Shown here: one piece after another, positions 289-46,400 of the stretch
Layout of the letters: every line of letters starts with the position of its first letter
Position numbering within the stretch: the first letter of the stretch is position 1
Assembly: GCA_023515725.1 (NCBI GenBank)
Contig: JALDTO010000132.1
Span: forward strand, 1 to 46,468
DNA: 46,468 nucleotides
Source: Amoeboaphelidium protococcarum X5
Taxonomy: Eukaryota; Fungi; Aphelidiomycota
Reading direction: 5' to 3'
Program-made: the position numbers and the translations under genes
The notes under the pieces: generated by a model
Database searches by the model: none
What the model saw: the letters and a program-made list of their open reading frames with translations, nothing else
What the model was told of the DNA's origin: nothing

Positions 289-1320
289 ATGACACGCATT
301 GATGATCTGGAAAAGTAATTGGAGCTGGATTAGCACGACAGTGTTGGCTAATTGGAGCTCTTTTCATCTAATGATGATGACTTCTTGTGTTATCAACTGG
401 GCATCACCATGAATGAATTTAAATCCATTAGGAGCAGAATTGCATTTGAAATTGCTCCTTAGTCTGTGAATTTTTTGGATTTGGGGGAGGAATACCTAAT
501 AACTGGGAATGTGTGGCTGGATTCTCTATTTGCCTCCCATGGTATTCCCAGAGGACAGCTGATCGAAGTTGTCGGAGAAGCTGGCTGTGGTAAGAGCCAG
601 TTAGCCATTTGGACTGCAATTCAAGTGATAAAAACATTTGATCCATCCAGTAATGATAAAGTTCTGTACGTGTCTATTAACAAGCCGTTTCCTATTAAAA
701 GACTCGAGCATTATTTCAGTTCTGACTAGAGCCAACAACCGCATTTGATGGGTAAAATGTTGATCGTAAACTGCTATGACACCGAAAGCCTGTTAATTCT
801 GACATCAAAACTTGGCGATATGGTTAAATAAGACAACATTAAGATGGTGGTATTTGACTCGATTGCTGCAGTTCTGCGGTATCCTTATGATACAATGGCT
901 GATGGAAGCTCGTGTTATGTCAGCTCCTAAGACGTGATTCTTTAGTTTGCATCTACTCTGCAGTCTGTTACTAAAGATAAGAACATTATAGCTATTTGTG
1001 TAAATTAAGTGAGCTCTATCATTAGAGAAATTCCAGATTTTAATAGTACTGCATTTATACCTGACACTATCTCTACTGCTAATCAGTTGAAACCGGCCCT
1101 GGGTGATGCATGGTAGTCTTATGTGAGGATTTAATTGTGGGTTAAGAAAGCTGGTCATGGTGTCCGCTAGGTTATAGTTGAGAATAGTCTGGTATCATCA
1201 TCTATTTAAAATGAATCTAAGTTCACTATAAGTGATACTTCCTAGTTGATCGTTCCTCAGACAGATGTAATTGTAAACCAAGGGGATCCTTTGGTAGCTG
1301 GTTGTCATGGTGCTGACTGA
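289..1320 (+). CDS. Rad51 paralogue, XRCC3/Rad57-like (343 aa, TAR=Gln)
   Basis: Single frame ATG289 to TGA1320. Walker A GEAGCGKS, Walker B MVVFDS, CVNQV (Q=TAA 1006) and KPALGDAW, typical of XRCC3/Rad57. Confidence 0.85.
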
Positions 1321-1376
1321 TCTCAATTTCTTGCTTTTAAAGTTCTTTTAACTATTACAATGTATTTAATGTTGAT

Positions 1377-3398
1377 ATGTCTGGTGAAGAAGAATCTGTG
1401 AAAGTTATTGTTAGAGTCCGCCCGTTAAAGTAGGATGAGGAGAATTGTGTGTTGGTGCGAAATAATACCATAGCGGTCCTGGATAAGTAGTTTAGATTTG
1501 ATCAGGTACTAGATGTTAATGCCTCGTAATCTGCCACTTTTGACCAAGTAAGCCATTTAGTGAATGATGTTCTTAATGGCTACAATGCTACAGTATTCGC
1601 GTATGGACAGACTGGCAGTGGCAAATCACACACCATGATGGGAAATTTATCAGGGAATAGGGACAATGAAAGGAGTCAACTTGGTGTAGTGCCGCGATTC
1701 ATTAATTTAATATTTGACCAGATGGAATAACTCAAAACTAGTCAGTTCATAATTTATGTTACTTATTTGGAGATATTTAATGAATAGATTATAGATTTAC
1801 TCAATGATGAATCGGGTGGAAAGTTGGATTTGAAAGATGATGGTAAGGGCGCCTTTATTGTTAAAGATATCAGTAAACATTCTGTGACTTCTCCTTAGCA
1901 AGTGTTTGATCTTCTCTAGAGGGGAAACTAATAGCGGTCGGTTGGGGCAACTTTGATGAATGAGTGGTCTTCTAGATCCCACTCAGTGTTTACAATTTAT
2001 ATCGAAAGTTGTTAAATAGAGTTGTCTCCTGTCGAAAGCATATAATCCGCAAAGCTACGAAACGCGAACAAAGTTGTAGTTGGTAAATTGAACTGCATCG
2101 ATCTTGCTGGTAGCGAACGATAGAGTAAAAGTGGATCATCTGGAGATAGATTGAAAGAGGCTATGAAGATAAACTAGTCACTCAGTGCTCTGGGTAATGT
2201 CATTTCAGCGCTGTCATCACGGAAACCTCATGTGCCATATCGAGACAGTAAATTGACCAAGTTGCTTATGGATTCACTTGGTGGAAGTTCCAAGACGGTT
2301 ATGATTGCCACCATTTCGCCGGCTACTTATAATCTGGATGAAACGGTGAACACTCTGCGTTATGCTCAGCGTGCCAAGATGATCATGAACAAGCCATTTG
2401 TCAACGAGGCTGCAGATAGTCTTCTCAATCAGTATTAGGATGAGATGAAGTAGATTTCCTCTTAATTGTAAAATTAAAGTCGACTCTCGTTGATGTAGTA
2501 GAATATAGATCGTGAACGATAGAGATTGAGTCAATTGAAGAATCAGACTTCGGCAGAGAAATCCAGTCTTGAGTAGTCCTTGCATTAGCGACAACTAGAG
2601 TTGGATCAGGAGGTTATGCGGTAGTAAGAACTCCTGTAATAAGTATTTCATTGGAAACAGCTTGTTCTGAATCACGGTGATAATTTGATGCTCCAAGTTG
2701 AGAAAAAGGCTGCCTCTCTATAACAGGAACGGTAACGACTGTAAGAGTCTAAGTAGTAGTCTATGAGAGTATTAGAGCGTGTCAGCTCAGCCAAGTAAAT
2801 TGATTCGCTATCAAAGAGAAAGGTGCAATAGCTGGAGGAGTAGTCTAATCAGTAAAGAGCGTAAATAGAGACATTACTTGGCCAATACCTTCGTGTACAA
2901 CAGTAGAAGACAGAGGCTTAGTAGAAGCAGAGAAATGGCGCGTTGTTTTTTATTGAGTAGATCCAGACTTACAAGTCTTAGATGCAAAAGTTGGATAAAT
3001 TGATTGAGCGACTCCTGCCTGAATATTTACCCAATGAGCTTATATCTAGAGCCGTTTATGATGATGATGAAAATGACTGGCTTCTCCGATCAATGTTTGA
3101 CCGTGAGATAATTGCCCAGCGCCAGAAAGACACCAAGTCTACTCTCCGTGATATTGTGATTAGTCATTCATCCAAAATTCTTGCTGATGATAGCAATCTG
3201 GCTCTTGAACGCGGCATCAATAATGAACTGTAGAATCATAATGACTAGATGCCATTTCCCCGCAGCTCACAAGAATTTCTCGTTGCTAATGGTTTACTGT
3301 CGAAAGTGAGAAACATTGAGAGCACACCTCAGCCTCCAGCTTCACGTCCTACGTTTACACGTAGAAATCCTGGAAACTTGAATATTTAACGCTCATGA
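1377..3398 (+). CDS. Kinesin-2 family (KIF3/FLA10-like) motor subunit (673 aa)
   Basis: [36 protein letters not shown] (Q=TAG 2121) and [13 protein letters not shown]. Coiled-coil stalk, then a KIF3-type tail motif LIERLLP...[11 protein letters not shown]. Confidence 0.88.
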
Positions 3399-3501
3399 TG
3401 TAAAATTTCATTTTCATTTACTTAATGTTTGTGGTCTTTTACTTGACTTGTGAAAACTTCATCAAATTCAGATTTTAGTTCCCTCGGCTAAAGATCACAA
3501 T

Positions 3502-44430: not shown

Positions 44431-44584
44431 TCAGTGATCTGTCTCAATAGATTCATAATAAAGTTAAAAAATGTAGGATCATAAGTTTCTTCGTTTTACT
44501 AGATCGTATCCTACAGTTATGAAATGATGCTATAATTTGATTTTGTTAAAATGAAAGAAGTATTGACTCTATTAAGTGATTAGA

Positions 44585-45136
44585 TCAATCTTCAAATTGA
44601 AACAACGACTGAACGACGCCATTGTTGGATGTCAACCGCTTTGCACCTTGGAGAGCTATTAGTTCAATTATAAAAACAAATTAACAGACACGGGCACCAG
44701 TGCTTTCAACCAATTATTGAGCGGCAAATGCGCTACCTCCAGTCGCAAGTAGATCATCAAATATTACAACATTAGCGCCGCTGGGTATAGAATCTTTCTG
44801 CATCTGGAAAGTATCGACGCCATATTCCTTCTGGTAAGAGTACTCGGCACAATCACCTGGCAGCTTTCCACTTTTCCTCACTGGTACAAAAGGACAATTC
44901 AAATGAATAGCTAGAGCGGGTCCAAGTAGAAATCCACGAGAATCCAAGCCAACAATTGCATCTACGCGCTCATTAGATTTCCTGATAAGCACAACCAGTT
45001 CTTAAATCATGCATTACACAGCCTAATGATCCTAGAAAATTGGAAATATATCCTGGAATAGAATTCCCTACTTTGGAAAGTCTGGATACGCCTTTATCAG
45101 CGATTTGACGCGCTCCAAACTATATTGTTGAGACAT
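44585..45136 (-). CDS. APT1: Adenine phosphoribosyltransferase (183 aa)
   Basis: YPDFPKQGILFQDI, GLDSRGF, VRKSGKLPG, YQKEYG and the PRPP loop VIFDDLLATGGS. Confidence 0.96.
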
Positions 45137-45719
45137 TTTATTATTATTGCATTGCCATTAAAAGGTCGTAACAGTTTCCATTGGCTTCGATCTAACCAGC
45201 GCGTAACCTTAACTAAGGCGGCGACGCGTCATCATTTCTCCCTCTTTTTTTAGCATTCTTATTGGCTGTTGAAAAAATTCTTCATTATTATTAGCTGTTG
45301 AAAAAAATGAAAAATTGATAAAATAGGCACAAGATCAATGAGCACTATTTTATCGATTTCATATGCACTTTATGATTATAACCAGGAACTTCGCAGTTTC
45401 CGCGAGAGCTGTACAGCTCGATGATACTGAACTTCCTTGGATGTATGAAAGTGCTTTCAGTACCCGATATCTGTCCATGGCTTATCAGAGAATTGATTTG
45501 TCCATGGTCACTCGATATCATTTATTATTATCATAAAAAGATGATGATAAATGTGAGGTACAGGATGAGAAAAGAAAGATAGGAAGTGCAAGCTTACCTT
45601 ATCAAATATGGGGATACCTTTTTTCTCTGATACCGAGTCTTTTCTTTTGTCTTTCTTTCTCTCGTCTTTGTCTTAACTATAAAAAACTTAAAACCTAAAA
45701 CTAACCAGTCATCTAAAGA

Positions 45720-46400
45720 ATGACTAGCAACAAGTCTACTCAGTACAAATACTTGTTCAAGTATATAATTATTGGAGACACTGGCGTTGGTAAAAGTTGC
45801 ATATTATTGCAATTTACTGACAAGCGATTCCAGCCTGTGCATGATTTGACGATTGGTGTCGAATTTGGCGCACGTCTTTTGCAAATTAAAGATCCATAGA
45901 GCGGTGGAAATGTGAATGTCAAGTTGCAGATTTGGGACACTGCTGGATAGGAATCGTTCAGGTCAATTACTAGATCTTATTACAGAGGAGCGGCTGGTGC
46001 TCTGCTTGTGTATGACTTGACCAGGAGGGATACATTCTCTCACTTGACGTCGTGGTTGGAAGATGCTCGAAATAATGGATCACCCAATATGGCCATCATT
46101 TTGATTGGAAATAAGCTCGACCTGGTCACTACAGATCCGTCCAAGCGCGCTGTCACTACAGAAGAGGGCAAGGCTTTTGCGTAAAAGTATAATCTACTCT
46201 TCTTGGAAACTAGTGCCAAGACTGCAGAGAACGTGGAGGAGGCGTTTATTGAGACGGCACAAGGCATTTACTCCAAGATCGAGTCTGGTGAGTTGGATCT
46301 GTAAGAAGGCTCTGGTATCAAGCTAGGCCCTTCTGTAAGCACCGCAGGTGGCCAGGCTATTCCGCAGTCTGACATTAACAACGACGGAGGATGCTGTTGA
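45720..46400 (+). CDS. RAB2: Rab2 small GTPase (226 aa)
   Basis: [51 protein letters not shown] (Q=TAG 45948), NKLD, ETSAK and C-terminal GGCC-TGA. Confidence 0.97.

Follow-up and report, generated by a model that had tools for sequence, protein, structure and literature searches.

Reassignment of UAA and UAG (UAR, or TAR in DNA) to glutamine with UGA left as the stop codon (NCBI translation table 6) is found in Tetrahymena, Paramecium, Stylonychia/Oxytricha, ulvophyte algae, Hexamita and Streblomastix. These systems resemble the one analyzed here in having dedicated tRNA-Gln species with UUA and CUA anticodons and an eRF1 release factor changed in the TASNIKS and YxCxxxF motifs. For the aphelid Amoeboaphelidium protococcarum the nuclear code was reported by Karpov et al. 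2013 (Protist 164:195), to which we refer as it is cited in PMC5304391 and PMC11687900. We analyzed the stretch of 46,468 nucleotides (nt) that forms contig JALDTO010000132.1, hereafter called the window, which an initial annotation made from the letters alone had read with the ciliate-type code. Our conclusion, to which we assign a probability of about 0.96, is that the window represents unexceptional, gene-rich nuclear DNA from A. protococcarum, in which both UAA and UAG have been completely reassigned to glutamine and UGA is the sole stop codon. This is the same reassignment in, almost certainly, the same species, with no difference in code, and the glutamine meaning of TAR is an already known property of a known species.

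Glutamine codons of the window and its duplicate

Nineteen intron-free genes, delimited by TGA when modeled, comprise 11,086 codons or 72% of the window, which has a GC content of 40.2% and in which no tRNA gene was found. The glutamine codons of these models are 235 TAA, 305 TAG, 164 CAA and 216 CAG; hence, TAR accounts for 59% of the glutamine codons, with 540 in-frame occurrences spread over the 19 genes. Open frames of at least 150 amino acids (aa) number four with the standard code vs 77 with code 6 (the 19 gene frames included), and code-6 frames reach 1,863, 1,620 and 1,075 codons. Frames open for up to 5.4 kb had been claimed in the initial annotation, and the formin frame indeed extends over 5,400 nt (17093-22492). 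The six TAR codons it cited as glutamine codons also proved correctly placed: TAG 45948 in Rab2, TAG 2121 in kinesin, TAG 4093 in ATP23, TAG 36746 in the carrier, TAA 1006 in the Rad51-like gene and TAG 37854-37852 (minus strand) in MBF1. Stop-free pieces gave Pfam-type family matches to kinesin, AAA, FH2, PIG-A, Xpo1-like, PH, mitochondrial carrier, MBF1, phosphoribosyltransferase and Ras.

The genome is duplicated with its genes in pairs, and a colinear duplicate of the window lies on contig C176 at ~90% identity. Alignment of the window with this homeologous copy (11,137 aligned codons) allowed an internal test of the meaning of TAR. The codon differences were 1,639 synonymous and 643 non-synonymous, the mark of purifying selection. 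The rate of T/C swaps at the first position was 11.6% in YAA codons and 13.0% in YAG codons, as compared with 8.6% (YTA) and 11.5% (YTG) for the synonymous leucine swaps and 0-2.1% in every family where the swap changes the amino acid. TAA and TAG exchange freely between the homeologs. As TAR and CAR swap at a synonymous-like rate, TAR is read as glutamine.

Alignments with homologues from outside the genome agree with this assignment. At the TAR columns of PIG-A glutamine is the commonest residue (53 of 217, or 24%, vs 0.9% at other columns), although several of these columns are variable and TAR does not always fall in a conserved glutamine column. A PF03463 profile search of the genome gave two eRF1 and two Dom34/Pelota copies. 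The eRF1 copies (L003 and L004) differ at 52 nt but at a single amino acid under code 6, and were aligned, with X at each TAR codon, against up to 120 outside homologues. TAG codons at human positions 44, 80, 185 and 211 stood opposite glutamine in 22, 49, 61 and 21 homologues, respectively, and no non-glutamine residue was present at these columns in more than five homologues. The catalytic glutamine of the GGQ motif is encoded by TAG in L003 and by CAG in L004. Hence, glutamine is enriched at the TAR columns of both proteins, and the initial claim that TAR lies at conserved glutamine positions stands as an enrichment, with some variable columns as exceptions. That TAR encodes another amino acid (glutamate, leucine or tyrosine), or that TAA and TAG differ in meaning, is scarcely credible: individual TAR columns do stand opposite Glu, Arg, Thr or Asn within variable regions, but exchanges of TAA and TAG with CAA/CAG and between themselves greatly outnumber those with GAR, AAR, TAY or TTR, and the GGQ glutamine that is written as TAG is invariant.

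TGA is the terminal codon of each of the 19 models and also of their homeologs; it makes up 4.2% of the triplets in shifted frames and is absent from frames of up to 1,799 codons. In Rab2 the prenylation motif GGCC directly precedes the TGA. TAR could nevertheless be context-dependent, read as sense inside genes and as a stop close to their 3' ends, the situation in Condylostoma or Blastocrithidia, and gene ends delimited by TGA could hide TAR-terminated genes from an examination of 19 genes. We consider this very improbable. The TAR share of glutamine codons in the last 30 codons (0.54) is similar to that elsewhere (0.60), and with no depletion toward the 3' end nothing points to context-dependent stops. 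Moreover, TAR stands immediately before the terminal TGA in PIG-A and RhoGEF, and both the Rab2 terminus and the TGA ends of the homeologs speak for TGA as the sole stop.

Transcripts were examined through the contigs of two runs (X9 and X12) that we took as RNA from their coverage, there being no library type on record. These RNA-like contigs leave the spacer at 41819-42400 uncovered and reach a depth of 2,741 on MBF1, where a contig that covers two TAG codons has a single differing letter. They contain no joints and keep TAR, with the T retained at TAG 37109, and therefore the editing or splicing of TAR, which the initial annotation had named as a refutation if seen in cDNA, is unsupported. 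Next to no weight can be given to the proposal that TAR is removed by U-to-C RNA editing or tiny introns, or represents assembly errors or pseudogene stops. The transcript evidence consists of assembled contigs rather than raw reads, which leaves such a proposal some room, but the 540 TAR codons are common to a homeolog under purifying selection and the cognate stop-reading tRNA genes are present.

Stop-reading tRNAs and the release factor

The initial annotation expected tRNA-Gln(UUA/CUA) elsewhere in the genome, and two genes of each were found: tRNA-Gln(CTA) at C158:362956 and C200:31431, and tRNA-Gln(TTA) at C158:383536 and C200:16432. The stop-reading tRNAs are closest to one another and then to tRNA-Gln(TTG), with U73 common to all, and this similarity shows that they derive from tRNA-Gln. 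UAG would be decoded by tRNA-Gln(CUA) and UAA by tRNA-Gln(UUA), and glutaminyl-tRNA synthetase (GlnRS) presumably charges both. Both types have a 4-bp anticodon stem with a mismatch at 27:43 (L070/L071 and L078/L079). The 4-bp stem was rejected as a suppressor-specific trait because it also occurs in seven tRNA genes for Lys and Arg. A search with the core pattern of the suppressor tRNAs gave chance matches alone, in a bacterial murB-like gene, and none in viral contigs.

The two near-identical copies are the sole eRF1. Domain 1 carries the substitutions T58A, S60V, R68K, L124M, L126Q and K130R, which alter TASNIKS and YxCxxxF, and retains GTS, E55, NIKS, S70, Y125, C127 and F131. The residues at 58, 60, 68 and 126 are shared by none of the homologues (up to 120) that cover these positions. 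A further change, L69Q, was discarded as diagnostic, as it is also present in a standard-code-type homologue. Judging from yeast and human eRF1 proteins mutated at L126/L123, the six changes most likely weaken recognition of UAA and UAG. Position 126 tunes stop specificity and is Phe in most UAR = Gln ciliates (PMC4482090), whereas the A. protococcarum protein has Gln, a residue found there in 0 of 120 homologues. L124M belongs to the QFM motif of Stylonychia (PMC3632111) and is common to both proteins. A UGA-specific eRF1 had been implied by the initial annotation; domain 1 is indeed altered at the stop-recognition motifs, and UGA-only termination is likely, judging from these residues. We found no description of the suppressor tRNAs or of the eRF1 changes in the literature, although one may be given in the paper on the genome by Mikhailov et al. 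(2022, Curr Biol).

Almost every recoded glutamine codon of L003 and L004 is TAG, and in one copy the GGQ codon is among them. Such codons could provide feedback control if readthrough of UAG is in competition with eRF1.

Species, gene content and relatives

A. protococcarum has a genome of 24.7 Mb with 40.5% GC and a genome-wide duplication (PMC10608142). The genome analyzed here encodes two TPPP proteins, both 190 aa long, together with four sugar porters, among them a pair with lengths of 503 and 504 aa. KAI3639621 and KAI3631655 likewise have 190 aa, the KAI363 accessions being those of strain X5 (PMC10057920), and MIR68_003639/MIR68_005154 have 503/504 aa, as compared with 501/502 aa in the other strain. 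The lengths thus match the MIR68 locus-tag set, which PMC10057920 calls strain X5. These lengths and the duplicated genome agree with published data and support the lineage named in the initial annotation. The public runs containing the window comprise two samples of 2022 and four runs of 2021 with a different label, which is circumstantial evidence compatible with two sequenced strains and an RNA study of host and parasite (PMC8657485). Its alternative, that the code is real but belongs to another fungus-related lineage and hence is a new independent reassignment, has only a slight chance of being correct. Sequence searches gave no named match and the assembly statistics are slightly off the published row, but four protein lengths are identical to A. 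protococcarum entries, and the copy numbers (two TPPP and four sugar porters per strain), the GC content and the duplication of the genome agree.

The claim that TGA is the only stop, which the initial annotation made for every gene and which the 19 models, their homeologs and the Rab2 terminus otherwise bear out, is partly circular because the frames were delimited by TGA. Three points weigh against our overall conclusion. Sequence searches yielded no matching named record, the organism's own proteins being absent from their results, and a RhoGEF piece compared with cluster representatives likewise gave no named entry that is near-identical. The RNA nature of runs X9 and X12 was deduced from coverage. 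Finally, the assembly totals 23.65 Mb in 346 contigs vs the published 24.73 Mb in 258 scaffolds, and thus the strain is not certain.

The genes of the window are as follows.

289..1320, plus strand: Rad51/RecA-family gene, 343 aa, 14 TAR, ends in TGA; Rad51/ATPase Pfam matches on a stop-free piece
1377..3398, plus strand: kinesin, 673 aa, 45 TAR; TAG 2121 follows DLAGSER; PF00225
3700..4230, plus strand: ATP23-like metalloprotease, spliced, limits approximate; TAG 4093; motifs from sequence
4272..5591, minus strand: Orc1/Cdc6-like AAA ATPase, 439 aa, 12 TAR; PF00004, subfamily from motifs
5912..6760, plus strand: 282-aa gene, 11 TAR; conserved in the homeolog
8146..10674, plus strand: ADAM-type metalloprotease 1, 842 aa, 39 TAR; HEXXH and Cys-rich motifs, weak ADAMTS_CR_2 match
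11008..13701, plus strand: ADAM-type metalloprotease 2, tandem paralog, 897 aa, 43 TAR; motifs from sequence
15125..16126, minus strand: 333-aa gene, 25 TAR
16246..16914, plus strand: DNL zinc-finger (Tim15/Zim17-like) frame; PF05180
17093..22492, plus strand: formin, 1,799 aa, 111 TAR, 5.4 kb without TGA; PF02181
22556..24067, minus strand: PIG-A/GPI3, 503 aa, 15 TAR; TAG directly before TGA
24862..28041, plus strand: importin-beta family (transportin-3/Mtr10-like), 1,059 aa, 47 TAR; PF08389
28159..29019, minus strand: coiled-coil protein, 286 aa, 20 TAR; syntenic ortholog in L106
30344..35206, minus strand: FERM-RhoGEF-PH open frame, start codon uncertain, 51 TAR
35961..36485, plus strand: Gln-rich 174-aa gene, 20 TAR
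36647..37591, plus strand: mitochondrial carrier, 314 aa, 13 TAR; TAG 36746; PF00153
37678..38127, minus strand: MBF1, 149 aa, 2 TAG; PF08523
38366..39238, minus strand: NCS1/recoverin-like EF-hand protein, 290 aa, 17 TAR; motifs from sequence
39410..41677, minus strand: GATA zinc-finger factor, 755 aa, 47 TAR; motifs from sequence
43771..44427, plus strand: remnant, chromodomain-bearing Ty3/gypsy-type integrase tail with TAR codons; PF00385
44585..45136, minus strand: APRT, 183 aa, 7 TAR; PF00156
45720..46400, plus strand: Rab2, 226 aa, 4 TAR; TAG 45948 follows WDTAG; ends GGCC-TGA; PF00071

The gypsy-type integrase remnant (43771-44427) is absent from the homeolog, and an 86% copy is present on contig C207. 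Both tandem ADAM-type metalloproteases (8146-13701, plus strand) have a signal peptide and transmembrane-like segments and are retained in the homeolog. A small spliced Cys-rich gene at ~29400-30100 (minus strand) has a signal-peptide-like start and a hydrophobic tail resembling that of a GPI-anchored protein.

A divergent PIG-A/importin pair like that of the window is found on Logan contig SRR9661224_540272 (L099), which has 50.6% GC and comes from a different organism. Its proteins are 80% (PIG-A) and 33% (importin) identical to those of the window, and its PIG-A is sister to the window's (support 98/91; 37 fragments). The contig contains 11 in-frame TAR codons and no TGA in 612 codons. Two of the 11 stand opposite glutamine in the window's proteins, and thus a glutamine meaning of TAR in L099 is likely rather than proven. 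The source of L099 is probably a relative of A. protococcarum that shares the code, and if so the reassignment would predate the species. A further syntenic relative in the same run (L106, SRR9661224_40139) keeps the importin - coiled-coil - FERM-RhoGEF order; it has no in-frame TAR in the aligned parts, and TGA closes each of its four long frames. A comparable pattern of in-frame TAR codons was not found in other close homologues of PIG-A and of RhoGEF (L100, L102-L107 and L109-L111), where stops fall in gaps or intron-like stretches.

Acceptor pair 1:72 of the nuclear tRNAs

The tRNA genes surveyed are 63 scored RF00005 matches, a set that favors well-paired genes and leaves out those containing introns. 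Of the 58 nuclear tRNA genes, 34 are mismatched at the first acceptor pair, 1:72, and their remaining acceptor pairs are almost all intact. These 34 genes belong to 16 of the 26 anticodon families and include the four stop-reading tRNA-Gln genes, in which U1 stands opposite C72. Base 72 is C in 51 of the 58, and base 1 of the mismatched genes is T in 18, A in 9 and C in 7. The first pair is kept in the Gly, Cys, His, Ser, Met, initiator Met and Gln(UUG) tRNAs. When copies with the same anticodon were compared (44 pairs, not all independent, with variation in six families), base 1 differed in 19 pairs (43%), as compared with 18-45% for flanking spacer, and positions 2-5 and 67-73 showed no difference. 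The mismatched genes sit on large nuclear contigs amid code-6 genes (L005-L034 and L049-L079), outside the window.

The Thg1 family (PF04446) is represented by two genes, each in two copies. One is a canonical spliced Thg1 (L081/L082). The second (L083 at C154:724337 and L085 at C205:152558) has the motifs of Thg1-like proteins (TLPs), is intron-free, encodes ~415 aa and has no in-frame upstream ATG. Given the spacer-like drift of base 1, the invariance of positions 2-5 and 67-73 and the existence of a Thg1-like gene, we put forward 5' editing of nuclear-encoded tRNAs as a candidate process and the simplest reading. In most cytosolic tRNAs of A. protococcarum the genomic base 1 would be removed and the Thg1-like protein would then add the base complementary to position 72. 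The proposal is tentative, and we rate its chances as somewhat short of even. All four stop-reading tRNA-Gln genes, with their U1:C72 mismatch, would depend on such editing.

Other readings of the mismatches compete with 5' editing. The 1:72 mismatch might be kept and tolerated in the cytosolic tRNAs, or base 1 might be cut off and not replaced. The TLP may also serve mitochondria alone: tRNA-Trp, -Asn and -Tyr of the mitochondrial contig (L080, which is C346, 23.6% GC) are mismatched at acceptor pairs 1-3, which resembles the chytrid-type editing signature. The unusual 5' ends are unlikely to result from a loss of RNase P, as an RNase P RNA match is present (L088, C98:1147722-1148018), although it is weak (20 bits, below the cut-off) with recognisable conserved end motifs.

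As a table-6 system A. protococcarum remains the cited opisthokont example of UAR-to-Gln reassignment, of an origin independent from that in the other organisms, and its genome is to be translated with table 6. Parts of this code can now be named, among them an eRF1 with the unusual L126Q plus T58A/S60V. The tRNA lead, if true, matters more than the known code. According to a 2014 review no 5' editing was known for nuclear-encoded tRNAs (PMC4284800), and we found no later report of it in the literature, although the genome paper may mention it. If true, nuclear-encoded tRNAs would join mitochondrial ones as 5'-editing substrates, and a function would be at hand for cytosolic 3'-5' polymerases, the substrates of which are an open question (PMC4284800, PMC6471195). 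The closest known process is the mitochondrial 5' editing by TLPs of Acanthamoeba, Dictyostelium (TLP3) and Spizellomyces, which is alike in the mismatch at the top of the stem, the conserved 3' strand and the presence of a TLP-type gene beside a canonical Thg1. It differs in that the known substrates are mitochondrial, whereas the genes described here are nuclear and affected at position 1 alone, so that the A. protococcarum process would be at most a nuclear counterpart of the mitochondrial one.

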